In this document: in pieces, positions 10,546 to 64,000 of the stretch
Numbering within the stretch: the first letter of the stretch is position 1
Layout: each line of letters starts with the position of its first letter
Assembly (NCBI GenBank): GCA_965603825.1
Contig: CBFDEM010000055.1
Location: 372,001-436,000 of the forward strand
Source: Blepharisma stoltei ATCC 30299
Taxonomy: Eukaryota > Protista > Ciliophora
DNA length: 64,000 bases
Direction: 5' to 3'
The notes under the pieces: model-generated
What the model saw: only the letters and a program-made list of their open reading frames with translations
Database searches by the model: none
What the model was told of the DNA's origin: nothing
Made by a program: the position numbers and the translations under genes

Positions 10546-11475
10546 ATTGACTTTTCTGTAATCTTAAATAACGATAATATTTAATAACTGATGAAGAGAA
10601 ATTTCCATTTTAAGAAAGAATTGCTTTAGCTTAACACTTAAATATTTTCACATTACTAGTTTTTATTTATTTTTTCTAGTTATTAAATATCAATTAATAA
10701 GATATTTCGTTTTCTTCTTTTTTTCTTACAAGATATTACCTTTTCTACTTAAAAAATTTAATTGAATTTATTCAATATTTTATATTATTAAAATGGTTTT
10801 AGAATTTTAGATGCTTGCTAAAATTCACAATTGAAATATAATAAAGTCCATCTTTGTTTTTTCTAAAATTTCTTAAAATTATCTAGACATTCTAAATAGG
10901 GTTCACTATTTTCTATTAATTTCTTAAGTTCCTTCAAAAATTTCTGTATTTCTAACATTCTATATTAAAATTGGATTATTAAGCCTCAAAACTAATAAAA
11001 ATTGAATAAAGTTTTTGGTAAATATTGTTTGATCAAATTATTTTTACTAGCAGATTATATTTTTTTAAGTTAAAGTTTATATGATTGGCCAAATATGGTA
11101 AGCTAAACATTGAATCATAAAATATAAAAACATTGAAAATCTGATCTTTTGGAAATTTAATTAGAAAAATAAAATATAAAAATATAACAGTTTAAAAATA
11201 AGAATTTTCCAAATTTGTTTCGCTTAGATACACGCAAGTATAATAATCATCTTATCTATGCTTTACACAAAAATACCTTTTTACAGTACTTAATTATCAG
11301 ATCTAAATGGCTAATAACTATTTTCTGTTTCAGGTTTGTTACAAAAAATTATGACAAATTTCTCTACTCTTAGACAGCATATAAATACCTCTAAGCGTCA
11401 ATAATTTTATAACAAATTTTTCTAGATTTTTTTTATTTTAAAGTTGTGGAAACCTAATAGCATTTAATACATAAT

Positions 11476-14400
11476 ATGACCAAAAATATGTTCTTTAAGG
11501 CTCAAATTATGTTATTTGCCCTCTTTGGCTTATGTCTGCCCCTCGAAGTAATACTATCTCGTTTCGATTTTCCTAAGAATGGCCAAAATTCTATTCAAGA
11601 GGCCTCGATTCAAGAAATTTATCAGTCATTTTCTTCAGTTGAATGGCATGAATGCAACTTTTCGACGATAAGAAATTGTGTTTCTGCTTATCCAAGTAGT
11701 TCAGTATTACTAGATCTTTCAGATTCTTCTGATGCCCAGTCTATTATTTCCCAAGTTTGTGCAGGCTACTCTATGATCCACCTCGTTTACCAAGATGGAT
11801 TTTTATATCAGAACGGGTGGATTTATTCTGTTATCTCTTCGGAAACTGAGCAATTAAACGCTTTTTTAGCTGTCTTAAAGTATTTTGGCTGGAATCAAGG
11901 AATTGTTATTAGCAACCAATATAACTCAAATTGAAAAGAAAAAATTACTAAAAACTATTCAGGACTAGAAGTTTTTAACGTTCAGCTAGGTACAAATATT
12001 AAAGATTTCATAGATAAAATAGTTTTTCCACTAGGTGCAACGCTTTATTACATTTTTACTTGCCCTATTTTGTCATCACAAATTCAGGGTTATATGAAAA
12101 CAAGGAAATTACTGGATAAAGGGCAAGGAATTATTTTGAATCAAGAAAGCGGGTATTGCGAAAATAATGATGGTGCTTTGATAATCGTAAAATCTGGCTA
12201 TGAATTTGTGATTTCAAAGGAGGAATATTTCAAAAAAGCTACAATAGATGCTATTTATTTATTAGAAAAAAATGAAAATTTGAGGGATTACAAAGAGTTT
12301 CTAAACTCTAAATTACAAAGAAGCTATGAAAATCAATTTTCATTAGTTAATATCCAGGGTGGAAAAAGAGTTATTGTAGGCTCTATTATAAACGGAAACG
12401 TTTCCATATCAGGAAATTTAAATTTTCCTGGCCAAACAAGTCAAATCCCAAAGTCAACAAAAAAACTCTTGCAATTAAGCATAAATGCTGGTACCACAAA
12501 TCCTGGGTCATCCCCAATTTATAATGCATTAGTTGGCGCTCGAGGGACTTTTGTAATTCAAAAAAAAATCAATGAAGGAAATGATATCCTATCAAATTTC
12601 CAGCTCGATTTTTTTACCTATGACTGTGGAGTCACTATCTTTAATTCCACTTTTGCCCAAGCTTGCTTCACCAAAAATATAGATAAGCTTGGCTTTGCTC
12701 ACATTGCAGGCTTTTCTTCAATGATGGCTGTTGGGACAATCCAATTATTTGAGAAACTTAATATATCAGTTCCAATAATTGGCGCTGCAAATGCTGATGA
12801 TTTATTGAACTCTACAGCATTATTCCCTATGTATTCAAGAGTCCAGCTATCACAGTCTTTTATTTGTTCAAAATATTTAGTTGTAATTAAAGGAATGGGC
12901 TGGAAAACTGCTGCAGTGTTATATCAGAGTGATATTTGAGGGGTCACTGTTTATTCTCTTGTAAAGCTATTTGCTGAAAAATATGGGATCGAGATTTTAA
13001 ATCCAGAAGAATCAAGACTAATACCAGTCGGACTAGATAGAATTCACAAAAAAAACGTTACAAATCAGTTGAAAAAAGTCATAAATTCACAAGCAAGGCT
13101 CCTAGTTTTACTTGTACAGCATCCATTAGGAAATTATATATTAGAATGGCTTTACGACCTAGGAGCAAGAAAAGGAGACTATGTGGTCTGTGCTGGCTAT
13201 CCAGATCTGCCCACATTTATTTCTATTGATGATGATTATTTATATAAGAGGCTGGAGACTGGAATCCCTATGTTTACAATTGCGGGCGAAACTTGATCAG
13301 AAGAATTTGGTAAAGATATTTATAAAAGAATCCTCACTACTTATAAGTCAGAGCCAAATACTTTTTCCTGTACATATGCTGATGCTACTTATATGATTGC
13401 TAGTGCTTTAGATTTTATGATAAATAGAGGATTAGACTATACTGATTCTAGAAAACTCATGACAACAATAAGAACCACCCAATTTCATGGCTGCACTGGA
13501 CTTGTACAGCTCGAGAAAGGCAGCAATGATAGAATTGTTGATACATTGATAATTGCAGGTGTAAAATTAATTGACGGAACCCCTTCCCTTTACATTATTG
13601 GGGTTTTTCAACCTTTTAGCTCGAAATTAATATCTATAATAAACCCAATGATATACGCTGACGGATCTACCTTAAAACCATCAGAATCCCGTAGCTCTGA
13701 CTATGATTGTCCATTTCCTGACCGAGAAATTCAATCTTTTGATAAAGGTAAAGGCCTTTTATTTGGAATTTGTTTTTCTGTAGCTTTAGTTATGATTATT
13801 ATCACATTTTTTATATGGAAAAGATGGTGGAATGTCTCTATAGAGCCGCTTATCACAAAAGAAGAAATGTCGATCCAAGATTTAATTGTCGGACTTACTA
13901 TTGGAATAGAATTTTTTCAATATGCTGCAATGGGACCAAGTTTTCAGGTTATTAATTCTTTTTTATCAGAGTTAAGCGGATTGCTTTCTATGAAGCTAGA
14001 AGATGTGATAAACCTGAAAAACGGGGTATTTTGGATTGTTGTGGATTTTGTGTTTGGAGGGATTGGAATATGGGTCATTCTTTGTGCTGTTGTAATATTG
14101 GAGCTTGATGACAGAATAAGGTTTCTTTCGATATTTAGGTTTCTAAGGTGGCTTGCTGACTGCTTGATGCCTATTTTAGGAAATCTTTGTTTTATCCCAT
14201 TTACCTCAATATGTCTTGATATATTCCAATGTGACGAATCAATAGGAGACAATTTTACTGATAGCTTTCTTGCTAAAGACTGCTATTATTTCTGCTGAAA
14301 AGGCAAGCATTTAATATACGCGATTATTTCGTTCTTTGCTCTGCTGTTTTATCAGCCATTAGCAGTCTATTGTCGTCCACTTTGGCAAGACCTGCAGCCT

Positions 14401-14889
14401 ACATTGCATGTGTTTACTTCTCCTGTTTTTCTTATGGTAAAAACAGTTATTCAAACAACTTTGATAGTAATGAGTATAACATTGAAAAGATCATACGCAA
14501 TCCCTCATGGGATCATCTTTATCCTTATTATGACAGCTTATACTGTATTTATTTTTAAATTTAAGCCGTATAATTATCCAAGATTTAGCTGATGGCAAGG
14601 TGTAAGTATGATTGGAGTAGTATGGCTTGCTTTATTGTCGATGATTGGGCGAAAAGCTGAAGGCAAAGATCTTTCTGTTGTGCTTTTAATTAGTTTGAAT
14701 GTAGGGTGGATTATTATTATTGGAATTGGGTTTTATGTACAAAATATAAAATATCCGAGTTTGCTTTATAGGAAAAAAGGAATTGATACAACTCACTTGT
14801 TTAAGTTTGCATTCACTTTTGGAAAAAGTTCACAAGCTACACTGTCAAAGATATCGAAAAACTCAGAGACAAAATTTAGTAATTTATAA
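11476..14889 (+). CDS. Large receptor-like membrane protein, copy 1: signal peptide, periplasmic-binding (ANF/Venus-flytrap) ectodomain, ~9 TM
   Basis: Six ORF fragments in one frame, joined by TGA=Trp (1137 aa). VFT-like motifs LNSTALFPMYSRV, MGWKTAAVLY and FHGCTGLVQ. TM module with CD...LAKD..FC[W]KGKH and FKPYNY. Confidence 0.85.
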
Positions 14890-15768
14890 ATATATTTTAG
14901 TGTTTATTTGAGTTTAAATTTTATTTCTTAAACTAGTAAGAAATTTAAAATTTTAATATATAAAGCAAATAAGAAATCAAAGTCCAGAAAGAAAATATGG
15001 ATTCAAACTTCATTAAATTAAGCTGTGAATTATATTAAATAGGCAAGCTAAATACATAGAGATAAACTTTAATATAAATTCAGAATAAATTTATGAAAAA
15101 ATAAAACTTATTTTAACATTTCTCAAACTATGAATTATCTAAAAACAAAATCGATTAATGCGCTGAAGTTTATTTACTTGTAGGAGTTTTGTATTTACTA
15201 AAATTTAATGCTTTAATGAACTGCTGAATAGCATTTGCTGAAACTTTTGTTTCATATCAAATTCATTAAATTAATTTAGGCAATTAAATCCTAATAAATT
15301 AGCAGAATGCGAAAACTCTTTGTTACAAACTGTATCTCATTCAATCCATCTATTTATTAGGTATCTTTGTTCAACCATAAAGTTTATTTTCAATTAAACA
15401 ATAGAAACACCTATTATTTGACAAACTTTTATTAAAGGTCTACCCAAAACTTAATTTAAGTATTACTAGAATTTTATGTTCGATTTTACCTTAAATTTAT
15501 CTCTCTTCGATATGCGCTGTATAATAATCATCTTCTCTATGCTTTACACAAAAATACCTTTTACATTACTTAATTATCATATCTAAATGACCGATAACTA
15601 GTTTTCTTTTTCAGCGCTATTCCAAATAATCTATCACAAATTTCTCTGCTCTTAAGCAACATATAAATGTCTCTAGCGTCAATAATTTTATAACAAATTT
15701 TTCTAGATTTTTTTTATTTTAAAGTTGTGGAAACCTAATAGCAATTAATACACAATATAACCAAAAAT

Positions 15769-18700
15769 ATGTTCTTTAAGGCATCATTTTCTCCTCAAAT
15801 CATGTTATTTGCCCTCTTTGGCTTATGTCTGCCCCTCGAAGTAATACTATCTCGTTTCGATTTTCCTAAGAATGGCCAAAATTCTATTCAAGAGGCCTCG
15901 ATTCAAGAAATTTACCAATCATTTTCTTCAGTTGAATGGCATGAATGCAACTTTTCGACTATAAGAAGTTGCGTTTCTGATTATCCAAGTAGTTCAGTAT
16001 TACTAGATCTTTCGGATTCTTCTGATGCCCAGTCTATTATTTCCCAAGTTTGTGCAGGCTACTCTATGATCCACCTCGTTTACCAAGATGGATTTTTATA
16101 TCAGAACGGGTGGACTTATTCTGTTATCTCGTCAGAAACTGAGCAATTAAACGCTTTTTTATCAGTCTTAAAGTATTTTGGCTGGAATCAAGGAATTGTT
16201 ATTAGCAACCAATATAACTCAAATTGAAAAGAAAAAATTACTGAAAACTATTCAGGATTAGAAGTTTTTAACGTTCAGCTAGGTACAAATATTAAAGATT
16301 TCATTGATAAAATAGTTTTTCCACTAGGTGCAACGCTTTATTACGTTTTCACTTACCCTATCTTGTCGTCACAAATTCAGGGTTATATGAAAATAAGGAA
16401 ATTACTGGATAAAGGGCAAGGAATTATTTTGAATCAAGAAAGCGGGTATTGCGAAAATAATGATGGTGCTTTAATAATAGTAAAATCTGGCTATGAATTT
16501 GTGATTTCAAAGGAGGAATATTTCAAAAAAGCTACAATAGATGCTATTTATTTATTAGAAAAAAATGAAAATTTGAAGGATTACAAAGAGTTTCTAAACT
16601 CTAAATTACAAAGAAGCTATGAAAATCAATTTTCATTAGTTAATATCCAGGATGGAAAAAGAGTTATTGTAGGTTCTATCATCAACGGCAACGTTTCCAT
16701 ATCAGGAAATTTAAATTTTCCTGGCCAAACAAGTCAAATCCCAAAGTCAACAAAAAAACTCTTGCAATTAAGCATAAATGCAGGCACCACAAATCCTGGG
16801 TCATCCCCAATTTATAATGCATTAGTTGGCGCTCGAGGGACTTTTGCAATTCAAAAAAAAATCAATGAAGGAAATGATATCCTATCAAACTTCCAACTCG
16901 ATTTTTTCACCTATGACTGCGGAGTCACTATCTTTAATTCCACTTTTGCCCAAGCTTGCTTCACCAAAAATATAGACAAGGTTGGCTTTGCTCACATTGC
17001 AGGCTTTTCTTCAATGGTGGCTGTTGGGACAATCCAATTATTTGGAAAACTTAATATTTCAGTTCCTATAATTGGTGCTGCAAATGGTGATGATTTACTG
17101 AACTCTACAGCTTTATTCCCAATGTATTCAAGAGTCCAGCTATCACAGTCTTTTATTTGTTCAAAATATCTAGTTGTAATTAGAGGAATGGGCTGGAAAA
17201 CTGCTGCAGTGTTATATCAGAAGGATCTTTGAGGGGCCACTGTTTATTCTCTTGTAAAGCTATTTGCTGAAAAATATGGGATCGAAATTTTAAATCCAGA
17301 AGAATCAAGATCAATACCAGTCGGATTAGATAGAACTCACATAAAAAACGCTACAAATCAGCTGAAAAAAGTCATAAATTCACAAGCAAGGCTTTTAGTT
17401 TTACTTGTACAACATCCGCTAGGAAATTATATATTAGAATGGCTTTATGACTTAGGGGCAAGAAAAGGAGACTTTGTAATCTGTGCTGGCTTTCCAGATC
17501 TGCCCTTATTTATTTCTATTCAGGATGATTATTTATATAAGAGGCTGGAGACTGGAATCCCTATGTTTACTATTTTAGGCGAAACTTGGTCAGAGGAATT
17601 TGGTAAAGATATTTATAAAAGAATCCTCACTAATTATAAGTCAGAGCCAAATACTTTTTCCTGCACATATGCTGATGCTACTTATATGATTGCTATTGCT
17701 TTAGATTTTATGATAAATAGAGGATTAGACTATACTGATTCTAGAAAACTCATGACAGCAATAAGAAGCACCCAATTTCATGGCTGCACTGGACTTGTAC
17801 AGCTCGAGAAAGGCAGCAATGATAGAATTGTTGATACATTGATAATTGCAGGTGTAAAATTAATTGATGAAACCCCTTCCCTTTACTCCATTGGGGTTTT
17901 TCAACCTTTTAGCTCGAAATTAATATCTATTATAAATCCAATGATATACGCTGACGGGTCTACCTTAAAACCATCTGAATACCGCAGCTCTGACTATGAT
18001 TGTCCATTTCCTGACCGAGAAATTAAATCCTTTGATAAAGGTAAAGGCCTTTTATTTGGAATTTGTTTTTCTGTAGCTTTAGTTATGATTATTATCACAT
18101 TTTTTATATGGAAAAGATGGTGGAATGTCTCTATAGAGCCGCTTATCACAAAAGAAGAAATGTCGATCCAAGATTTAATTGTCGGACTTACTATTGGAAT
18201 AGAATTTTTTCAATATGCAGCCATGGGACCAAGTTTTAAGGCTATTAATACTTTTTTATCAGATTTAAGTGGATTGCTTTCTATGAAGCTAGAAGATGTG
18301 ATAAAACTGAAAAACGGGGTATTTTGGATTGTTGTGGATTTTGTGTTTGGAGGGATTGGAATATGGGTCATTCTTTGTGCTGTTGTAATATTGGAGCTTG
18401 ATGACAGAATAAGGTTTCTTTCGATATTTAGGTATCTAAGGTGGCTTGCTGACTGCTTGATGCCTATTTTAGGAAATCTTTGTTTTATCCCATTTACCTC
18501 AATATGTCTTGATATATTCCAATGTGACGAATCAATAGGAGACAATTTTACTGATAGCTTTCTTGCTAAAGACTGCTATTATTTCTGCTGAAAAGGCAAG
18601 CATTTAATATACGCGATTATGTCGTTCTTTGCTCTGCTGTTTTATCAGCCATTAGCAGTCTATTGTCGTCCTCTTTGGCAAGACCTGCAGCCTACATTGC

Positions 18701-19173
18701 ATGTGTTTACTTCTCCTGTTTTTCTTATGGTAAAAACAGTTATTCAAACAACTTTGATAGTAATGAGTATAACATTGAAAAGATCATACGCAATCCCTCA
18801 TGGGATCATCTTTATCCTTATTATGACAGCTTATACTGTATTTATTTTTAAATTTAAGCCGTATAATTATCCAAGATTTAGCTGATGGCAAGGTGTAAGT
18901 ATGATTGGAGTAGTATGGCTTGCTTTATTGTCGATGATTGGGCGAAAAGCTGAAGGCAAAGATCTTTCTGTTGTGCTTTTAATTAGTTTGAATGTAGGGT
19001 GGATTATTATTATTGGAATTGGGTTTTATGTACAAAATATAAAATATCCGAGTTTGCTTTATAGGAAAAAAGGAATTGATACAAGTCACTTGTTTAAGTT
19101 TGCATTCACTTTTGGAAAAAGTTCACAAATTACACTGTCAAAGATATCGAAAAGCTCACTGATGAAATTGTAG
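15769..19173 (+). CDS. Receptor-like membrane protein, copy 2 (tandem paralog)
   Basis: Near-identical to copy 1 at an offset of ~4293 nt; one frame with TGA=Trp; ends TAG. Confidence 0.85.
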
Positions 19174-24196: not shown

Positions 24197-25210
24197 ATGC
24201 AAAATCCTAATCATAAATGCATAGATTCTGGTACGTTGTCTGGATATGTAAAAATGTCACATGGAGATCGGAAGGCCTGAAACCAAGATGTAACCCTTAT
24301 TTAGGAAGATGATGCCATCAAAGCTCTTGTCGAAGAATTCGGAGTCAAGCATTGGACACTCATTGCACAACTGCTTGTAGATAGATATGGGATTAAAGGC
24401 AGGTACATTTTATGCAGAACTGGCAAGCAGTGCAGAGAACGTTGGCACAATCACTTGGATCCACAAATAAAAAAAGACACATGGACTAAAGAAGAAGAAG
24501 ACACAATCTTTGAATATCAGAAAACTTATGGAAACAGATGGTCAGAAATAGCAAAATTTCTTCCAGGCCGATCTGATAATGCAATAAAGAACCATTTCTA
24601 TAGTACGATTCGCAAGAACTTAAGGAGATACAATAGAAAACGCCGCCCTGAAGAGAAAATCTCTGGGCCTATAAAGCAAATTCTTCAAGATCAAGACTTG
24701 ATGGAAATCTTGATGGCATACCCAGAAAAAGTTTCTAATAAAAACAAGACACTCTCAAGTGAGCCTAAGCAACTGTAAGTCATAATTAGGAGAAGGTCAA
24801 GCCGAATTATTGATAGGAAAGACACAAAACCACAAATTAGCATAGAAACTGATATAAACGATAACGAGGTCCCATCCATTTTATGTTCACTTTATGATAC
24901 ACCTAAGGAAAATGCTCACAAGAAGTTAGTTACACCATCGATGAATGGGGCTAGCTTCGAAAGCTCTAGGACTACTCCTAGCAGCATGATAACTCCGTCA
25001 AAGCTTATTAGGTTTCCTGATCAGGGCTGTTTTTTCAATTTTCAAGAGAAGAATCAAGAAGAAAACCAACCAGACACAAATGAAGACCCACCGGTTAGAT
25101 CAGATTCTTCGCAAACAGTCACCCTGGAGCCAGCCAAAACTAAAGTTATCCCACAATTTTCGATCCCAAAACCTGAATATTTACCTTACACAGCAGAAGA
25201 GCATCAATAA
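24197..25210 (+). CDS. R2R3 Myb transcription factor, three 15-nt introns
   Basis: After splicing: RKA[W]NQDEDDAI...KHWTLIA...[17 protein letters not shown]...WTKEEE...[23 protein letters not shown]. Alternative start at 24254. Confidence 0.9.
24290..24304 (+). other. 15-nt spliceosomal intron GTAACCCTTATTTAG
   Basis: GT-AG with A at -6. Removal deletes an in-frame TAG and restores Myb WNQDED. Confidence 0.9.
24403..24417 (+). other. 15-nt intron GTACATTTTATGCAG
   Basis: Removal restores the canonical [11 protein letters not shown]; A at -6. Confidence 0.85.
24775..24789 (+). other. 15-nt intron GTAAGTCATAATTAG
   Basis: Removal deletes an in-frame TAA and links to ORF 24941..25210. Confidence 0.88.
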
Positions 25211-37189: not shown

Positions 37190-37717
37190 TTAAACCTGCC
37201 CAGAAGGCTTCTCTAACAACGCGACAATATCCTGCTCAAAGCTCAATGGGTTTGTCCTCGGGCCATAATAATTCACAATATTCCCTTCTTTATCTATCAA
37301 AAATTTACCGAAATTCCACCCAATTCTTTTTCCTTTAAGCTTGCTTTTCTGCCTTAAAAACTTATACATTTCACAAGCTTTTTTACCATTGACCTCCACT
37401 TTGGAGAATAAATCGAATTTTGCGTTAAGGAAATTTCTCACATGGTCTTTTATTTCTTCATGGCTGCCTGATTCCTGCCAAAAGAATTGATTACAAGGGA
37501 AGCCTAAAATGCATAACGCTTTTTCTGCATAGCGCGAATATAAATCGTTAAGTTGGGCATAATTTTTAGTAGTTAGTCCACACCCACAAGCTACGTTTAC
37601 AATTATCATGACTTTTCCTCTGTATTGGGCAAGGCTGACTGGATTGCCATCTATGTCATTCATAGTGAATTCATATATTGAGCTTTGCTGAACTGGTTCG
37701 CTGCTAGTGCACCCCAT
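37190..37717 (-). CDS. GPX: Cys-type glutathione/thioredoxin peroxidase, copy 1
   Basis: VNVACGCG, LGFPCNQF and WNFGKFL; N-terminal MGCTSS. Confidence 0.93.
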   Translation of the reverse strand: MGCTSSEPVQQSSIYEFTMNDIDGNPVSLAQYRGKVMIIVNVACGCGLTTKNYAQLNDLYSRYAEKALCILGFPCNQFFWQESGSHEEIKDHVRNFLNAKFDLFSKVEVNGKKACEMYKFLRQKSKLKGKRIGWNFGKFLIDKEGNIVNYYGPRTNPLSFEQDIVALLEKPSGQV

Positions 37718-37942
37718 TTTATTTATACAAGAATGATATTATGCCACTTTATTAGAGAAAATAAAAAGACTTCTAGAATAGGCATTTAATTTTTTGAATT
37801 ATTTATTAAGAAAATTTTTATTATAAAAGACTAAATAAAATCAATAATAATTTAGGTAGCAATATTTGAGGATTCAGTGCGATCAAATAAAAAATATTTA
37901 GAAATTCTTTAAAATATTTAATTGAGTCTATTATCTAAATTC

Positions 37943-38458
37943 TTAAGGTTTTTCTAGCAAAGTAGCAAGTTCTGCCTCGAAATCGAGAGGGTTTGTTTTT
38001 GGGCCATGATAACTGATTATATTCCCCTCCTTATCAATTACGAATTTTCCAAAATTCCACCCAATCTTTCCTCCTTTAAGGGAGCTTCTTTGCCTTAGAA
38101 ATCTGAATAAGTCACAAGCTCTTTTTCCATTGACTTCTACTTTGGAGAATAAATCGAATTTTGCTCCTAGGAAGCCTCTGACGTGTTCTTTTATTTCTGG
38201 CTCTGTCCCTGATTCTTGTCCGAAGAATTGGTTGCAAGGAAAACCTAGAATGCGTAAACCTTTTTCTTCATAGCGTTTATAGAGCTCATTGAATTGAGCA
38301 TAATGTTTAGAAGTCAATCCACACCCACAAGCGACGTTAGCAATTATCAGGACGTGTCCTCTATAGCTTGCAAGGCTGACGGGGTTCCCGTCAATGTCGT
38401 TCATTGTGAAATCATAGATTGAGTTCTGTTGAAGAGGTGTGCTATCGGTACTTCCCAT
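37943..38458 (-). CDS. GPX: Cys-type glutathione/thioredoxin peroxidase, copy 2
   Basis: Tandem paralog with the same motifs; N-terminal MGSTDS. Confidence 0.93.
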   Translation of the reverse strand: MGSTDSTPLQQNSIYDFTMNDIDGNPVSLASYRGHVLIIANVACGCGLTSKHYAQFNELYKRYEEKGLRILGFPCNQFFGQESGTEPEIKEHVRGFLGAKFDLFSKVEVNGKRACDLFRFLRQRSSLKGGKIGWNFGKFVIDKEGNIISYHGPKTNPLDFEAELATLLEKP

Positions 38459-42101: not shown

Positions 42102-43601
42102 CTAAGCTGGTGGAATTAAATTTTGGCTTGAAAGTGCTATCCCATTCATATTATTCAGCCCAACTACATGAGAATCTATATAAGGAACTAGGGGTGATTT
42201 GAATTTTGGATCGATGGCTTTAGCCCTTGCAGCCAATGCATCCCATTTTGCTTCAACAGTAGCTCTTGCAGGCAAATTATGCATGGTACTTAAAGAGTTT
42301 GATCTTGCCAAGTCTCTTGATCCAGTTTGAAGAGCTCTATCGAACGCTACAGGGTCTATTTCTTTCAAAATTACTTTTAATGCATTTAACGATTCTTGCA
42401 AAATTTTATGCCAGTGAGTTTCTGCTAGTTCTACAATGACTGGAACAACCATAGGAAAAGTGACTTGTTTAAAGGTACGTAAAATACCTAAGAAATAATC
42501 ATTTTCAAAGAAACACATAGCACGATCTGCAACTTGAAGCTGAGGTCCTGAAATACACCTAACAAGCCTTTTAAACAGTTTCGGAATAAGCGGTTCAAGC
42601 TTTGCCAACTCACATACTTCTAAAACTTCTTGAAGCTCAGTCAAATATAAAGTTTCTTTAACAGAGTTCCCAAATGGCCAATATCTTAATAGCCCTTCTA
42701 CTAGTGGGATTGCTAAAGCATGATCCTTGCTTAAGAAAAGCATCGAACATCTGAGAAGCTGCTCATGGAAAATATGGGAAGTCTGGACTTTATGCAGAGG
42801 AATCATGATCACTTTAAAGAAAACTACATGCTCTTCTCTCAGAGGGACTGCAAAACCGCTGATAATTGATGCTAAAATATCCAAAAGTTCGCTGGCTCCA
42901 TTGAATCTTTGAGTTTCATGTATCATAGTTAAAAATGAGTCATTTATAGCTTTTCTTATCATTTTCCTGCGTGGTACTAACTTTGCGTAGAGCCTATGTA
43001 AAATATTTTTTAAATAATCTCTTTCTCTAGGCTCTTCACTATCAAAAAGCTGCAGAAAATCTTGAATAAAGCTGGGGGTAATAAAGACTTTTAGGCTTTT
43101 CACATCAGTTGCCTCACAAATGATCAGTTCAAAAAAGAATTCGTAAACTCCTTGTAAGTGTGGTCATGCTGGATCAATCACTATATCTTCGTCGCCACCT
43201 TCAGCGCCAGCTTCACCTGGGCCTAGTTTATCTCCGCCTTTTTTGTCCATAGGGAGTGGTCTGAAAATATTTTTCTTGATCATGTCAATTACAAGATCCA
43301 AATGAGGGATTACATATTGAGCAACATTTTTTGAGTCATTTAAAAATTCTCTTAAGTCTTGCAAAGCTGCATTTCTCTCTGCTTTGGCTTTAACATCTTT
43401 ATTGTCATCAGAATAATCATAAGTTATGCTGCACAGCTGAACTCGCTTTAAAAACATTTCTTTAGCATCTTTAGGGGTATGCTTTGTATCTGTTGCAGCT
43501 TTTCCTCTGACTGGAGGTGCAGGAGCTGCTTTTCCCACTTTTCCAACTTTGCCACGGGGTTGAGGGTTCGCCCCGGCTTTGTAAGCACCCGGCGTTGACA
43601 T
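42102..43601 (-). CDS. PPP2R5: PP2A regulatory subunit B56/B' (499 aa)
   Basis: NIFRPLP, DPA[W=TGA]PHLQGVYEFF, FDSEEPRERDYLK and GFAVPLREEH. Confidence 0.95.
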
Positions 43602-44489: not shown

Positions 44490-44573
44490 TAGCATCTAAT
44501 TTATTCAGTTTTTAAATATTTTTTTTGCAGTTTTTTAATATCCTCGTCTTCTGATGTGTCGCTTGATGATTCA

Positions 44574-44672
44574 TAAGATTTTCCAAATAAATGGCTTATT
44601 AAGATATAAAATTAATTGTATTTTGGATAAGAATTGGGGGAATAATATAGAGAGATTATGCAAAGAGATATA
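44574..44672. other. TA-bounded IES-like insert 2 (97 bp excised) in the STIL-like gene
   Basis: TAT direct repeat on the coding strand. Excision fuses VPKIIY to ESSSDTSEDE. No GT-AG ends. Confidence 0.55.
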
Positions 44673-45303
44673 TATAATTTTTGGAACTGCTATTGTAGTA
44701 TCTGAATTCCCACGAGAATTTGTTTTAGCTTTGGGGGGATTTTTAGGAAGATCCTGTGACGAGTCTGTAAAATATGAATTTCTTGCTGATGCTGCAGGGC
44801 TCGAAAAGAGGATTTTGGAGAAGTTTCTGAAGACTCAGACCCTTCAGTAGAAAATCTTAAATTAGGGACTCTTGGCATTCGGGGTGGTCTTTTAGGACGG
44901 TCTTTATGCATAAATGAAGTATTCGTCGAAGCCGATTGTTTTTCATGAAAAAGAGTTCTGCATGACGGCGATTTTTTATCAATTGTAGTATTTGTTGAGG
45001 AGTTCACCATTTTTGGAGAATTTCTTGCAAATTGATATTTTGGTTTTGGACTTTCAAGCTGAGTATAGCAGATTTGGCTTTGGAGTTCTTGGATTTGTTT
45101 TTCTAATCTCCTCAGCATTTGTGCTTGCTCTAGTATCAAATTTTCTGTTGAAGCCCCATTGCAGGTTTCTAAGCTTGACCTTGGTGACCTAATTGGCATA
45201 TCTTTTATGCTTGAGTATCCATCACTTGAAATGCTAGGGCTCGTAGTCTTTCTAGGTTTCCTTATATCAGCTTTTGGTGATGTTAAAATGCCATAATTTA
45301 ATG

Positions 45304-45405
45304 TATATACTTTTATTTAATTTTAAATATATATTTTATATAAAATATATATTAAGACAGCACAATAGAAATATTTTACGCATTTGAATCTTATTCAGCA
45401 GAATA
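45304..45405. other. TA-bounded IES-like insert 1 (100 bp excised) in the STIL-like gene
   Basis: Very AT-rich, has stops in both flanking frames and TAT...ATA ends. Excision restores the frame (LKGTLNYG). Internal 28-bp palindrome at 45326-45353. Confidence 0.55.
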
Positions 45406-46456
45406 CCTTTCAAAAAAGTACATGTTTCTGATAAAAACGATCCATTTTCTGCCCTTAATTCAAATATGGAATTTGCTATGCACCAGGCGGGTTTTTCTTG
45501 GGTACTAACTTCGTAAAATGCTGGCTTTGAAGAAAAATTGGCAAAAAGAAAAGTATTTTGCTCAGGGTTTGGAGAGATTCGGCCCTGAATCAGCTTGCTT
45601 TCAATAAATCTTACACAAGCTGCCTAAACTAATGGATGAGCTAATGGATTTGTATGGTCTCCAGTAGCTCCAACAGATCAGACACCTACAAGGGGATATC
45701 TGAATGCTAGAGGGTCAGAGCATAATAACGGCAAAACCCTCTTTTTTTGGTCAAGAGTCAGATAGCCAGTTTGGAATTTTACTTTTTTATCAGTTTTCTG
45801 TGTCAATTGTATGCTCAATGGTGTCGATACTATTTTCAGCATAGAAATTTGCACAAACTGCAAATTCACGTAAGGAAACAGCATTTGGCAGTTTGCGAGC
45901 AGTCGTCCATCGTTTATTACAAAACTAAAAGCAGCTTTACAGAGATCAAGGGGTTCTAAGTACTCAAATTCTGCATAAGAATCTAGTTTAAACATCAAGC
46001 TTTGTAAAATAAATTGAAACTCCCTTTTATCAGTTTCTAATATATCCCTTGAAAATAATCGAATTATATAATCTCCTGAAGACCTTGGCGTTCTTGCATT
46101 CTATTGTAGCTCATTAATCGTGACTGTTAAGTAATGAGATTGACTATATTTAGAGCCTATTAGCAATCCGCCAAATGCAGTTTGGGGAGATTCTTGTAGG
46201 CATTCTGTATATATAGATTCTAAAACTTCAGGGGTAAACTTGATTACAGGTAATATAGACGACGGCGAAAGAAGGCTTTTTTTGCCAGTAGGAGCCCTTA
46301 GTCATAATGAGGATTGTGAGGCCGATAAGTTTATTTTTTTGATAATAGAAAGTGTTCTCGTCTCAAAACTAAATGGTTCTTCTTGATAGTTATCCATTTT
46401 AAATTATTTTAACATGTTTTAAGTTTGCCAAGGATTGTAATTTTTGTTATTTAATA

Positions 46457-46984
46457 ATGCACACAGACATTAGCCCTTTTAAAACACAAAAAGCAACAGT
46501 AAGCTCTTTATTGATGTCAATAAAGCTAAAAAACAGAAACAAAATCAAGCATAACAGAGAAACTTCATTAGAAGAGCCTTTGTTTGCAGTTTCACAAGGT
46601 GGAAAAAAATATTCAAAAAATTCTCCTTATAAGGCTGATTATTCGTTGATTTTCCAGCCTCCAAAGTATGACTTGGAGAAGGTTTTTAATTTTCATGACA
46701 TGCAGCAGGATCTAGATTATTTGTTGATGCCAAAAAGAAGCTCTAGCTCAGCTACGTATACGAAAAAGACAAATATTAGAGCAAAAAGCCCTGATTGTAA
46801 TATATTTAATCAGAAATCCAGTAAAGGATTTTCGCTAGAAGCAACTGTGAGACAGATTACTCCTGGTAGGAGAATTTGTGGAAATATATTTAAACCAAAA
46901 AATGAGTGATCAACAATAAAGATAAAACATATGAATAGGTTCCATATTGCAAGGATTCCGACGGTAAAACTGGATTCCGATTAA
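46457..46984 (+). CDS. Basic protein of unknown function (175 aa)
   Basis: ORF extended past the TGA at 46907 to the TAA at 46982-84. Confidence 0.65.
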
Positions 46985-57900: not shown

Positions 57901-58219
57901 TTTATTAATACAAACCCTTTATCTCTTGCGTTATAAAATGATACGAATTTGTCAAATACTCTAAATATTTTAAAACTTAAATTGCACATAGATGCGATAT
58001 TGCTCCTGAAATGATTACCTCATTATAAGCAAATCTCATTAAGAAATTTTAAATATTTCATATAAGCACTGGCTTGATAATTATAAATGTGGACAAAATA
58101 GGGCAGAATTATCATAAGCGAAATCTTTTGTATTTTTCATAAAATTTTATTATTCTTTAAGACTAAAGACCTAGCTAAAATCATTTATTCACCAGATTAA
58201 AAGATATCTAAGAAATAAA

Positions 58220-60262
58220 ATGAGATTAACTCTCATTTTTACCCTTTCCTTAGCCTTTGCCCAGTCTTCCTTAAAAGAATGCCAAGCAGAGTGGGCAAAG
58301 ATTTTTGAGGGAGCTGAGGACATTCTAAGCCAAAATCCCTCTGATTATACCAAGATGTTCTTGTACTCTGGGTTTATGATCAATAACCTTGGTCAATACG
58401 ATCCATGTACAGACATCTCAAATGCCAAGTTTACCATTATCCAGTTTGGAATTTACCCAGTTCTTGTAGTTGCTTTATGTGGCCCGAAAGTGTGTACAGA
58501 GGAAGATTACTATCACCTTTTGACTAACATTACTTCACCAGTCCCTTTGTCAGGCATGATCAGAAAAAATAATCCGAAATTGGCACCTTATCTTAAAGAT
58601 TTAGAAGAAATAAAAGCCCAGAGCTTTGCTCCTCCAGTCGTTTTTCCTAAAGAGTATTATGATGACAACTTTAAAGACTATAAAGCAGGCCCAATTTTGA
58701 TGATAATTTTCATCTCAATAATATCAGCCATTTGCTTAATTGCTACTATTACAGACTATCTTATTTCTTCATCACCGCCGAGTTCGAGCTTATCAAAAGA
58801 AGACCCCAAGCCTCGAGAAAGTTCCCTATTTATTAAATATCTCCTCTGTTTCTCCATCATTACTAATTTAAAAAAGCTATTTATAAGCAGAAGCCAAGAA
58901 AGACTAGGCAAAAAAGATTCTCTTGACATACTAAACAGCTGCCGTGTGCTCTCTATAGGTTGGGTTGTCCTTGGCCACGTCCTTTTTATGCTGTGGTCAG
59001 AAGCAATAGTTTCGAACCCGGATCGGATTTTGACTCAAATTTCTGGCTCAGATATGATTCTTCCTATCAGCGGAGAAGTTTCTGTTGACACCTTTTTCTG
59101 ACTTTCTGGGTTTTTGGTGGGGTATCTGCTAATAATAGAGATCAATTCTGCTAAGAAAATGAACTGGATAATGGTTTACGCTCACAGATACTTAAGACTT
59201 ACACCTTTGCTATTATTTGTAATCTTGTTCTTCTGGGCTCTTCAAAAGCACATAGGAAATGGCCCAATGTGGTATACAGGAGACATTATTAATTTTCAAT
59301 GCAAAGATTATTGGTGGACCGATATTTTATATATAAACAATATCGTCCCTAATTATCACGGAAGTGTCTGTTTAGGCCAAACTTGGTATTTAGCTAACGA
59401 CATGCAATTTTTCATATTCACCCCAATTCTTCTTTATATTTACAATAGATTCCACAAGTCAATTCTTTGGGTTTTAGTATTGTTTTTAAATCTATTATCC
59501 ATTTTGACTTCAGGACTCATAGCAAACCACTATTCACTCAATGCGATGCCATCAGCGCTTCCTAATGGGACAAACTACTTCAGATACTATTATACAAAGC
59601 CATATAATAGATGTGGTCCATATGCTTTAGGAGTCTTATCTGGGCTTATTGTTTACTCATATAGGAAATTCCAAGATAAAAATATCGTTTATGACTCTTA
59701 TGCAATCTGGGTCGGAAAAATGCTGGAAAATCGCTATGTGAGATATACAATTGCATTTTTAGGGATGGCGCTAATAAACGTCAATTTATTTGTCCCTTAT
59801 GATACTTATAAGCACCCAGGAGATACGATGAATTATCCACATTGGACTCATGATGAAAATGTAGCTTATATAGCTTTCAATAAAGTCACTTTTGGGCTAG
59901 GGCTTACCTTTGTGTTACTCCCAGCGTTATTAGGGCATTTTCCCTGGATGACCTGAATACTTTCGTGGGAGATCTGGACTCCATTGGCAAGAATGACTTA
60001 CTGCGTTTATTTAATTCATTATAATATACTCGATATTGCGTACAGAAGCCAAAAAGTTGCGACTATCCTGGATGAATTTACTTTAATAAGAGATTCAATA
60101 TTTTTCTTTGTTTTAGCTCACATTTTGGCACTACCTTTTATTCTCTTAATAGAGATGCCAGGATTAGCAATAGAAAAATTGGCTTTTTCAAAAGTTAGGG
60201 CAAAAGCTGCTATTAAAGAGCAAGAGAAGTCTATCATTCTCCAGCCTCTAACTAAAGAATAA
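58220..60262 (+). CDS. NRF-6/OacA-type membrane O-acyltransferase, copy 1
   Basis: Signal peptide, NRF domain (LGQYDPC...ALCGP), VDTFF[W]LSG, HRYLRLTP and WYLANDMQ. Confidence 0.9.
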
Positions 60263-60880
60263 TCATTATTCTTAATTTTTGTCTTGATGATTAAAAGGAA
60301 ATAAGGATTTAAATATAAATAATGGCTATATAGTGGAAATAGTAAAATTATTTAATAAATCATCATTATAGCCGGATCCTTTAAGGTAATGACAAATAAT
60401 TTATAGAGATTTTTTGGTTATAATCTTCATATAAAGCAGATTATTTTTATAAACTTAACAGATTCATAAACTTATTTAAACAAATAAGAAATTAAATAAG
60501 CGATTTCTACTCTTTTGCTGATGAAATTTTAAAATAATATATGAAGTCGTATTTTTCATATTTATTCACCAAATATGGTACAATTTAGATAATGTTATTT
60601 TTGGTTTGCAGAGGCAAGCTATTTACAAAGCTATTTCTTTTCTTAATGTCTATTATCTTTATATTGATTATTTTTACATTAACAATATCAATTCTTTATT
60701 TAAACTAAAGGTGCTTTTAAGATTCAGACCTATAGCTTGCAATATGGACGTCAATAATTCAATTTGCTTAAAAGTTAGCGATATGAAACATATATCTAAG
60801 TTTTTTAAAAGATATTTTATAACTAAATTGCCATTTAAATTTATTCACCAGTGGAAATAAATGGCTTGTTTATAATCATT

Positions 60881-62896
60881 ATGAAGTCATTTCTTATTCT
60901 TTTTATAATAGTTGAAGTGGTTATATCAACCCTCCAAGAGTGCGAATCTGAATGACTCAAAATAATGGACGCTGGCAAAGGTATCCTCGATCCAAATCCT
61001 TCAGATTACACCAAAATGTTCTTATATTCTGGCTTCACAATGAATAACCTCGGGCAATATGATTCTTGCACCGACATTTCTATAGCAAAATACACCCTTA
61101 TAATGCTTTCTCCATCTCCAAATATACTATTTGCCTTATGTGGGCCTAAAATTTGTTCTGCCGAAGACTATCAACAAATGCTTTTTTCTCCACGAAATTC
61201 AAGCGTCATTTCAGAAATCATTGGAAAACAAGTTTTTAGCTTAAAATTATCCAAAAATTCAGCCCAGCCTATAGGTATTCCTGTTATTTTTCCAAAGGAA
61301 TATGTTGATGATCATTTTAAAGATTATCAAGCTGGGACAATTCTTATGATAATTTTTATAGTGATTTTATCAGTTTTTGTACTATTTGCTACTTTTTTGG
61401 ATTACAGACAAGCTTATAATACAGGATTAGAGAAAAATAACAGCAAGAATCCATTATGAATGGATTATCTTCTTTGTTTTTCTATAATCACTAATATTAA
61501 AAAACTATTTATTAGTAGAAGCCAAGAGAGATTAGGGAAAAAAGACTCTATGGAGTTGCTAAACGGTGTGAGAGTCCTTTCTATTGGCTGGGTCATTCTA
61601 GGCCACACATTTCAAGCACTTATGGGAGTCGCTGTAGTTTCTAACTTCGACCACTTTGACGATGAAACAAAAAAATCTTATGTAACTGTCCCAGGAGCTG
61701 GTGAGTTTTCTGTTGATACATTTTTTTGACTTGCTGGGTTCTTAGGCAGCTATTTGATACTTGTAGAACTAAATTCTTCAAAAAGATTTAACTGGGTTAT
61801 GGTCTATGTCCATCGTTATTTGCGGCTTACTCCTCTTGTGCTGTTTATTATGCTATTTTTCTGGGCATTCCAAAAATATATAGGCAGCGGCCCGATGTGG
61901 TTTACTGGTGACGACCTAAACAGTCCATGCAAAAATTGATGGTATACCCCTTTACTTTATGTAAATAATTTCGTCCCTCATTATAAAGGAAGTGGCTGCT
62001 TAGGAGTTACCTGGTACTTAGCTAATGACATGCAGTTTTTTATTATAACTCCTCCTATTCTATATTTATACCACAAGTACCACAAATCAATAGGCTGGAT
62101 TGCGATTGGGCTGCTTACTCTTCTATCAATTTTAAGCTCAGGGCTTATTGCCCATCATTTTTCTTTCAATGCAGTCCCTTCTGCCCAAGCAAATGGTGTT
62201 AATTATTATTACTATTATTATATAAAACCTTACACTAGATGTGGCCCATATATTATAGGTATTCTAACAGGCTTAATTGTGTACTCATATAGAAGATATC
62301 AAGACAAAAAAGAAGTTTATGACCCATTTGCGGTCTGGATTGGGAAAAAATTAGAAAATCAAAAAATTCGCTTTGCAGTTGGCTTCTTTGGCTTGGTCCT
62401 GATAAATTTGATGGTTTTTGTTCCTTATGATTCTATAAGACACCCAGGGAAGAATTTTGAATTTCCTCATTGGACTCAAGACGAAAACATTACTTTTATA
62501 GCTTTTAATAAGGCTGTCTTTGAATTTGGGCTCACACTTGTGCTGCTACCAGCTTTATTAGGCCATTTCCCTTGGATTTCTTGGATTCTTTCTTGGGATG
62601 TGTGGACTCCTTTGGCGAGAATGACCTTTGCTGTGTATTTAATACACCTTACTATTATGTTTATTTGTTATGAAAGCCAAAGAGTTGCGTATATTTTTGA
62701 TGAATTTAATATGATAAGAGACGCAATTTTTTTCTTTGTGATTTCGTATGTGCTGGCTTTACCTTTTGTGGTAATGGTAGAAATGCCAGCTTTGGGGATT
62801 GAAAAATTGCTGTTTTCTTCGGTTAGAAAAAAGCAAATTGAGGCTAAGAGTCTTCAAGAAGAAGCTCTTATGCCTCTCAAGAAGTCGGTTGAATAA
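60881..62896 (+). CDS. NRF-6-type acyltransferase, copy 2
   Basis: ATG at 60881; fragments joined by TGA at positions where copy 1 has TGG. Confidence 0.9.
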
Positions 62897-63017
62897 CTTA
62901 ATTGATTAGAAAATAAATATAATCATGAAATTAACCACTAAATACCTTATAATATAATAAAACTAGTAAAATAAAATCAATCTTCTTTATATCAATATGA
63001 TTATAATATTAATATAA

Positions 63018-64000
63018 ATGTGATTGCTGCTCCCTTTCACATTCATTGCAATCTCTCAAGCATCTTATTTTGAATGTGAAAGCGAATGGGGAAAAATATT
63101 ACAAGCCAGCCAAGACATTCTGAGCCCAAATCCTTCAGACTACACAAAGATGTTTTTGTACTCAGGATTCATGATAAATGATCTTGGCCAATACGACCCT
63201 TGCAATGATTTATCTATTTCTAAATACACTTTAATAGTGCTTTTCCCTTATCCAAGTATGCTAATTGCACTATGCGGGCCTAAAGTTTGCACAGCAGAGG
63301 ATTATCAGCAGCTTCTGGCAAATCATACATTTTATCAGACCATATCAGAAAAAATACAATTTCATAACCCTTTAATTGATTTAGAGCAGCTTAAAGCTGC
63401 TGAAACAGCATTGCCTGTGATTTTTCCTAAAGAGTATATTGATGATAATTTCGAAGATTTTAGTACCGGAGCAATTCTTATGATAACTTTTATTTGCATT
63501 GTTGGAGTGATAGGACTTTATGCAACATCTCTCGAATACTATTTATTGTCGAAAAAATCGAAAGAAATAGTGGCAGAAAAAGCAGAAATGATAGAGCCAA
63601 GAGCTGAGGATTCAACTTTGGTTAAGTTAGTCCTATGTTTTTCATTAATTTCTAATACCAAAAAGCTTTTTGTCAGTAGAAGTCAAGAAAGGCTTGGAAA
63701 AAAAGACTCAATGGAATTATTAAATAGTGTAAGAGTGTTATCCATCAGCTGGGTTCTCAATGGTCACGTCCTTTTGATGCTTTATTATGTTACAGTCATA
63801 TCCAACGCTGATACTTATATTAAAGAAGTTTCCAAATCTCAATATATAATCCCATTAGCTGGAGAGTTTGCTGTTGATACCTTTTTTTGAGTGTCAGGTT
63901 TTCTCGTCACATATTTGCTTATCCACGATATAAATAATTCAAAGAAAATGAACTGGCTTATGATTTACGTTCACAGGTATCTTCGTATAACACCTTTATA
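63018..64000 (+). CDS. NRF-6-type acyltransferase, copy 3 (runs off the window)
   Basis: Starts ATG-TGA-TTG (M-W-L) with the same motifs; open at the window end. Confidence 0.88.

Follow-up and report, generated by a model that had tools for sequence, protein, structure and literature searches.

We identified in the ciliate Blepharisma stoltei ATCC 30299 a STIL-family gene that is very probably (we put the probability at about 0.84) a recently dead duplicate (ohnologue) left by a whole-genome duplication (WGD) and carrying two fossil IES-like inserts. The gene lies on contig CBFDEM010000055.1 (C55), within the 64-kb stretch 372001-436000 that was analysed as a whole and is called the window here; coordinates below are those of the window. 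The reading frame runs on the minus strand from 46397 to 44501, with a TAA stop at 44503-44501, under a code in which TGA specifies Trp across the whole window (UGA=Trp code). Two premature TAG codons, two inserts and a frameshift interrupt it. The segments of the gene and its nearest neighbours are as follows.

46403..46981, plus strand: gene X, intact, syntenic with the outgroup and not found beside the C37 copy
46104..46397, minus strand: coding segment 1, from the ATG to codon 98, with TGA=Trp at codon 32; 68% amino acid identity to the C37 paralogue
46101..46103, minus strand: premature TAG, codon 99, placed by alignment to paralogues
45627..46100, minus strand: coding segment 2, core STIL_N domain, matching PF15253
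45624..45626, minus strand: premature TAG, codon 258, placed by alignment to paralogues, homologues and PDB 5OI9
45406..45623, minus strand: coding segment 3, end of STIL_N, by domain match and alignment
45306..45405, no strand: insert 1, IES-like, with putative boundaries; absent from paralogues and outgroup
44805..45305, minus strand: coding segment 4, with linker, predicted coiled coil and NTT motifs, by alignment
44804..44807, minus strand: frameshift in a run of four T, by alignment to C37
44673..44803, minus strand: coding segment 5, ending at the conserved PKIIY motif, by alignment
44576..44672, no strand: insert 2, IES-like, splitting the PKIIYESS motif
44501..44575, minus strand: last coding segment (acidic tract and KKYL end) and TAA stop, with the same end as C37
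43707..44486, plus strand: gene Y, intact, syntenic with the outgroup and not found beside the C37 copy
42105..43601, minus strand: PP2A B56 subunit, intact; shares 97.5% identity with the twin that lies next to the STIL gene of C37; synteny anchor and rate control

The STIL-like N-terminal domain described in the first-pass annotation was borne out. In a profile search the core piece matches PF15253 (STIL_N) with an E-value of 4e-8; against a Pfam cut-off of 27 bits, one piece scores 33 and the read-through 62 bits. A profile of the relatives of the window gene also matches PDB 5OI9 (E 1e-21), an entry that we take to be the N-terminal domain of STIL. A heptad-like conserved block at ~45148-45068, with weak matches to coiled-coil proteins alone, is plausibly a coiled coil, and the PKIIY...KYL end of the protein is conserved in ciliate homologues and may correspond to the animal STAN motif. 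Family membership alone would suggest a role of this copy in basal-body duplication. Coding segment 2 contains a 123-aa ORF present in the protein database as P0001; a word search with the core piece recovered nothing but this ORF of the locus itself, with no fragments from other strains.

The assembly searched for paralogues comprises 41.46 Mb in 64 contigs (in agreement with the MAC assembly published in PMC9942806). It holds seven STIL_N loci, six of which consist of one unbroken ORF each (444-670 aa). The seven-copy arrangement fits successive genome duplications. The loci form three pairs (C55/C37, C38/C32 and C13/C20), alongside a short divergent copy on C39 (444 aa) that is devoid of the KYL end. 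The closest paralogue of the window copy is the one on C37 (L016:4740-6476), with 74% DNA identity. As outgroup we used L030, a Logan contig (SRR24908292) from a heterotrich with the UGA=Trp code, in which the genes are ordered PROPPIN, kelch, aminopeptidase, X, STIL, Y, MORN, B56, Z, GPx. The window retains PROPPIN, X, STIL, Y, B56, Z and GPx; the 10 kb examined on C37 retain kelch, aminopeptidase, STIL, MORN and B56. Measured against the outgroup, the window and C37 thus display reciprocal loss of neighbours. At its position on C37, the STIL gene points the opposite way from its counterparts in the gene orders of the outgroup and the window. The outgroup carries genes from both of the duplicated B. 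stoltei blocks and may therefore stem from a lineage that diverged ahead of WGD-beta. The dS between the window copy and C37 is ~1.8-2.1, a rough value at saturated sites, and the published WGD-beta peak of Blepharisma lies at Ks 1.8 (PMC13685798). Intact, syntenic and with a dS at the published peak, the C37 copy is, judged from sequence, the WGD-beta twin of the window copy.

The genes around the interrupted copy are clean, as the first-pass annotation had it: five of them (PROPPIN, gene X, gene Y, PP2A-B56 and gene Z) align over their full length with the outgroup orthologues and contain neither stops nor inserts. Elsewhere, the window contains two tandem 1142-aa ORFs with 95% identity (11461-14886 and 15742-19170), a tandem glutathione-peroxidase-like pair (37193-38458; 74%) and three tandem membrane-protein paralogues (58175-63998; 54-57%). 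A Myb-like gene at 24305-25207 has an in-frame TAA at 24776, inside a candidate short GT..AG intron.

Relative-rate counts between the window copy and C37, with L030 as the outgroup, show 67 lineage-specific amino acid changes on the window lineage versus 21 on that of C37, at 47 versus 53 silent third-position changes. The corresponding nucleotide N/S counts are 105/101 and 43/79 (Fisher p 0.006), and the tree branches measure 0.31 and 0.10. Private deletions number five in the window copy, four of them in frame, and none in C37. The neighbouring B56 gene, taken as a rate control, shows no excess (1 versus 7 changes). These counts indicate relaxed selection on the window copy, with protein evolution about threefold faster, followed by recent death. 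Most of the acceleration would have taken place while the gene was still translated, because four of the five deletions keep the frame and missense changes affect just 2 of 63 highly conserved columns. The protein-level relaxation and the in-frame deletions must be older than the frame-breaking lesions.

Branch codon models give an omega of 0.05-0.09 over the whole window branch; omega=1 is rejected, and the value is not significantly above background. These models are uninformative here, because the synonymous sites have reached saturation and a brief neutral phase at the tip of the branch escapes such models. A dN/dS near 1, proposed beforehand as grounds for giving up the interrupted-gene interpretation, was thus not seen, and a value far from 1 is what is expected of a copy that died very recently and whose branch is saturated. 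From the 2 missense changes in the 63 conserved columns, the fully neutral phase comes to ~0.015-0.03 substitutions per site (about 0.02), which predicts 0.9-1.8 stops, and two are seen. Although this is young by sequence divergence, mutation rates in ciliates are low, and such a phase would span a great number of sexual cycles, long enough for the excision of both IESs to be lost.

The two TAG codons and the two ~100-bp AT-rich inserts were found where the first-pass annotation had placed them. The frameshift, too, stands at the place reported, near 44804, in the T4 run 44807-44804; described there as a 1-nt shift, it turns out to be a loss of 7 nt when compared with C37.

For insert 1 the best model is a TA-bounded sequence of 100 nt (45405-45306; 15% GC); taking it out gives exactly the length of the closest paralogue. 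Its boundaries are the less certain ones, because an alternative 97-nt GT..AG segment (45406-45310) restores the frame as well. It contains a perfect 28-nt palindrome made of A and T only. Insert 2 measures 97 nt (24% GC) and is flanked by a direct repeat, TAT (44672/44575); removing it restores the exact motif. Its right end, TAA GAT TTT, is one base off the reported Blepharisma IES end consensus TAT rrn ttt t (bioRxiv 2022.05.02.489906). Both inserts are AT-rich and, at 100 and 97 nt, fall within the range of 65-115 bp given for the periodic IES class of B. stoltei, whose genome carries ~1 IES per kb (PMC9942856). A TA-containing direct repeat that leaves one copy after precise removal is clear for insert 2, and for insert 1 is the best of several models. 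Spliceosomal introns of the heterotrich type (15-16 nt) were rejected: no GT..AG in insert 2 is compatible with the alignment, and insert 1 offers just atypical long GT..AG options. Membership of insert 2 in a repeat family was likewise rejected, as it occurs in a single copy in the genome. IESs are present in the germline and excised from the soma. Both inserts stand in the somatic consensus and in the DNA runs, and are therefore at most fossil or retained IESs. Taken together, the inserts look like periodic-class IESs that are no longer excised. Recruitment of IESs into somatic sequence has been described in Paramecium (PMC3464196).

Could the lesions be artefacts of assembly, through micronuclear reads or homopolymer consensus errors? 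The frameshift does sit in a run of T and the inserts are germline-like, but four DNA runs (X1-X4), which probably include both MAC HiFi sets and Illumina reads and may be the assembly's own source, hold a share of 1.00 of the 31-mers sampled at the locus. This dismisses assembly error for the inserts and makes it improbable for the single-base lesions. In addition, residual IES retention in the MAC libraries is at most 0.02 (PMC9942856), the neighbouring genes are clean and the faster evolution does not depend on the five lesions. Assembly errors, which the first-pass annotation had named as a possible undoing of its interpretation, thus appear unlikely as the source of individual lesions, and an artefact is hardly credible as an explanation of the locus. 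A gene intact in wild B. stoltei (e.g. HT-IV), with lesions or retained IESs that became fixed in the homozygous reference strain during its long culture, is decidedly improbable as well. Strain ATCC 30299 is nearly homozygous and has been in culture for more than 50 years (PMC9942806), and in a second DNA sample of that study only 41% of the words of the region occur. However, this share is what a divergence of ~3% would yield by itself, and five independent lesions together with ~45 excess amino acid changes are impossible within decades, so that a loss in culture could account for no more than the latest lesions or the retention.

Of the words of the region, 64-74% occur in four runs that are probably RNA, and the neighbours could supply only ~15%. 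The locus therefore seems to be transcribed, and is probably so, a point against a dead gene; the share cannot distinguish edited or excised RNA from unprocessed RNA. Transcription also bears on the question whether the two TAGs are, or were, recoded to Trp, by stage-specific A-to-I editing of UAG to UGG or by leaky reading of a UAG far from the poly(A), with the gene still producing protein at some stage or in some strain, or killed later by the frameshift and IES retention. We consider this unlikely. The case for it starts from the positions of the stops. The TAG at codon 99 (46103-46101) replaces a Trp found in 6/6 B. stoltei paralogues, encoded by TGG in five, and the TAG at codon 258 (45626-45624) a near-invariant Trp present in 26 of 27 homologues and also in PDB 5OI9; at either column the six paralogues all have Trp, encoded by TGG in 5-6 of them. 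Under neutral models the probability that both stops arose as TGG>TAG is 0.0004-0.003, and 29 Gln codons were left unhit. The conserved motifs are largely intact, and precedents exist in the A-to-I correction of premature stops in Fusarium (PMC10776026) and in the position-dependent stops of the heterotrich Condylostoma (PMC4967479). Against this, the column of codon 99 has Ile in the outgroup and is variable in Stentor-type homologues. Editing of A to I repairs neither a frameshift nor inserts of 100 nt, the protein has accelerated threefold in the presence of six intact paralogues, and where pseudogenes number in the hundreds, a coincidence of this kind is to be expected once. We therefore read the position of both stops at Trp codons as chance.

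Further searches bear on the same question. G>A missense changes are not in excess in the window gene (10/105), which rejects broad restorative editing, and no stable hairpin surrounds either TAG, which rejects a structured editing substrate. A search of the genome found no ADAR or ADAT1 domain and is uninformative, as the control gave no match either. Hypermutation in a CC context was rejected, since the changes show no context bias, and so was the possibility that the TAGs are ends of 15-nt introns, since they are collinear with the paralogues. We surveyed 134 kinase, 105 papain and 59 TTL matches (~300) for in-frame stops. Those in the eight kinase loci checked, of ten that bear stops, and in four TTL loci belong to 15-nt introns; TAG as a general sense codon was rejected, the kinase and TTL TAGs being intron ends. 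The papain-family copies yielded about a dozen nonsense codons, of which one is at a Trp and the others are at Gln, Glu, Tyr, Lys or ambiguous positions. The stops examined are thus introns or nonsense codons, with a single Trp case, in a survey small enough to miss a class as rare as that of Fusarium (71 genes). The exception, L032 (G000:C58:227056-227691 +), is a papain-family tandem copy with one in-frame TAG, codon 181, at the conserved Trp of YW..NSW in an otherwise open domain; it counts in favour of recoding and joins the STIL copy as a candidate case of TGG>TAG. Another papain-family copy, L031 (G000:C8:213338-213982 +), has its single TAG (codon 87) at a probable Gln position, again in an otherwise open domain. 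In these two genes and the STIL copy, single-type interruptions of otherwise open domains are all TAG, and terminal stops are TAA three times as often as TAG (37 versus 11). In so small a sample, the all-TAG interruptions may hint at a leaky UAG. That Blepharisma recodes some premature UAGs to Trp, through A-to-I editing or position-dependent readthrough, and that the STIL copy is or recently was gated in this way, possibly together with conditional IES excision, seems to us quite unlikely. A switch combining stage-specific excision with recoding, the second of the two options in the first-pass annotation, finds no support here: it would have to excise two inserts, recode two stops and overcome a frameshift, taking four separate repair mechanisms on a fast-evolving copy, and the intact paralogue that was to speak against it exists six times over. 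To our knowledge, mRNA editing has been neither reported nor shown in ciliates, and if the coincidence of the stops with Trp codons reflected true recoding, it would give ciliates their first case of mRNA editing that corrects stop codons, or of UAG decoded as Trp.

The young pseudogene, possibly with IES retention, that was the first option is the one supported, with decay visible as lesions, faster protein evolution and private deletions. A recently dead ohnologue could have arisen as follows. After WGD-beta, the window copy would have come under weaker selection while still being translated, hence the mostly in-frame deletions. It would then have died recently through two nonsense changes and the frameshift. 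Two ordinary short periodic intragenic IESs, normally cut out at each sexual cycle, would have ceased to be removed, before or after the nonsense and frameshift changes, either order being possible. Their retention would be tolerated because it is costless in a dead or dispensable gene, and it could be fixed by mutation of an IES end or by maternal inheritance. The window copy would thus be a clear, ordinary case of late duplicate-gene loss in a genome that keeps six intact STIL paralogues, and an instance of IESs that settle in somatic sequence after the gene around them has become dispensable.

Several known systems resemble parts of this locus. As in the A-to-I stop correction of Fusarium and Neurospora, UAGs stand at Trp positions in an apparent pseudogene. 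Correction of the fungal type calls for a reading frame that is otherwise intact, whereas the window copy has a frameshift and two frame-breaking inserts beyond the reach of editing, accelerated evolution and intact paralogues. With the STIL/SAS-5/Ana2 factors (PF15253; PDB 5OI9) the window copy shares the STIL_N domain, a conserved C-terminal motif and plausibly a central coiled coil, at ~570 aa as in other heterotrich homologues, but it is interrupted. The inserts share with the short periodic TA-bounded IESs of B. stoltei and Paramecium a TA or TAT repeat, a length of 97-100 nt, AT-richness, a non-repetitive sequence, an intragenic position and the restoration of the frame on precise removal, but, unlike those, they persist unexcised in the MAC consensus and are known here from somatic sequence. 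The closest parallel to the locus as a whole may be the ohnologues pseudogenised after WGD in Paramecium and after WGD-beta in Blepharisma, with which the window copy shares a syntenic twin, reciprocal loss of neighbours, a dS at the WGD peak and relaxed selection followed by nonsense and frameshift changes. It differs from typical post-WGD loss in that a very recent death befell an old duplicate, and in that two IES-like inserts have become fixed in the soma.
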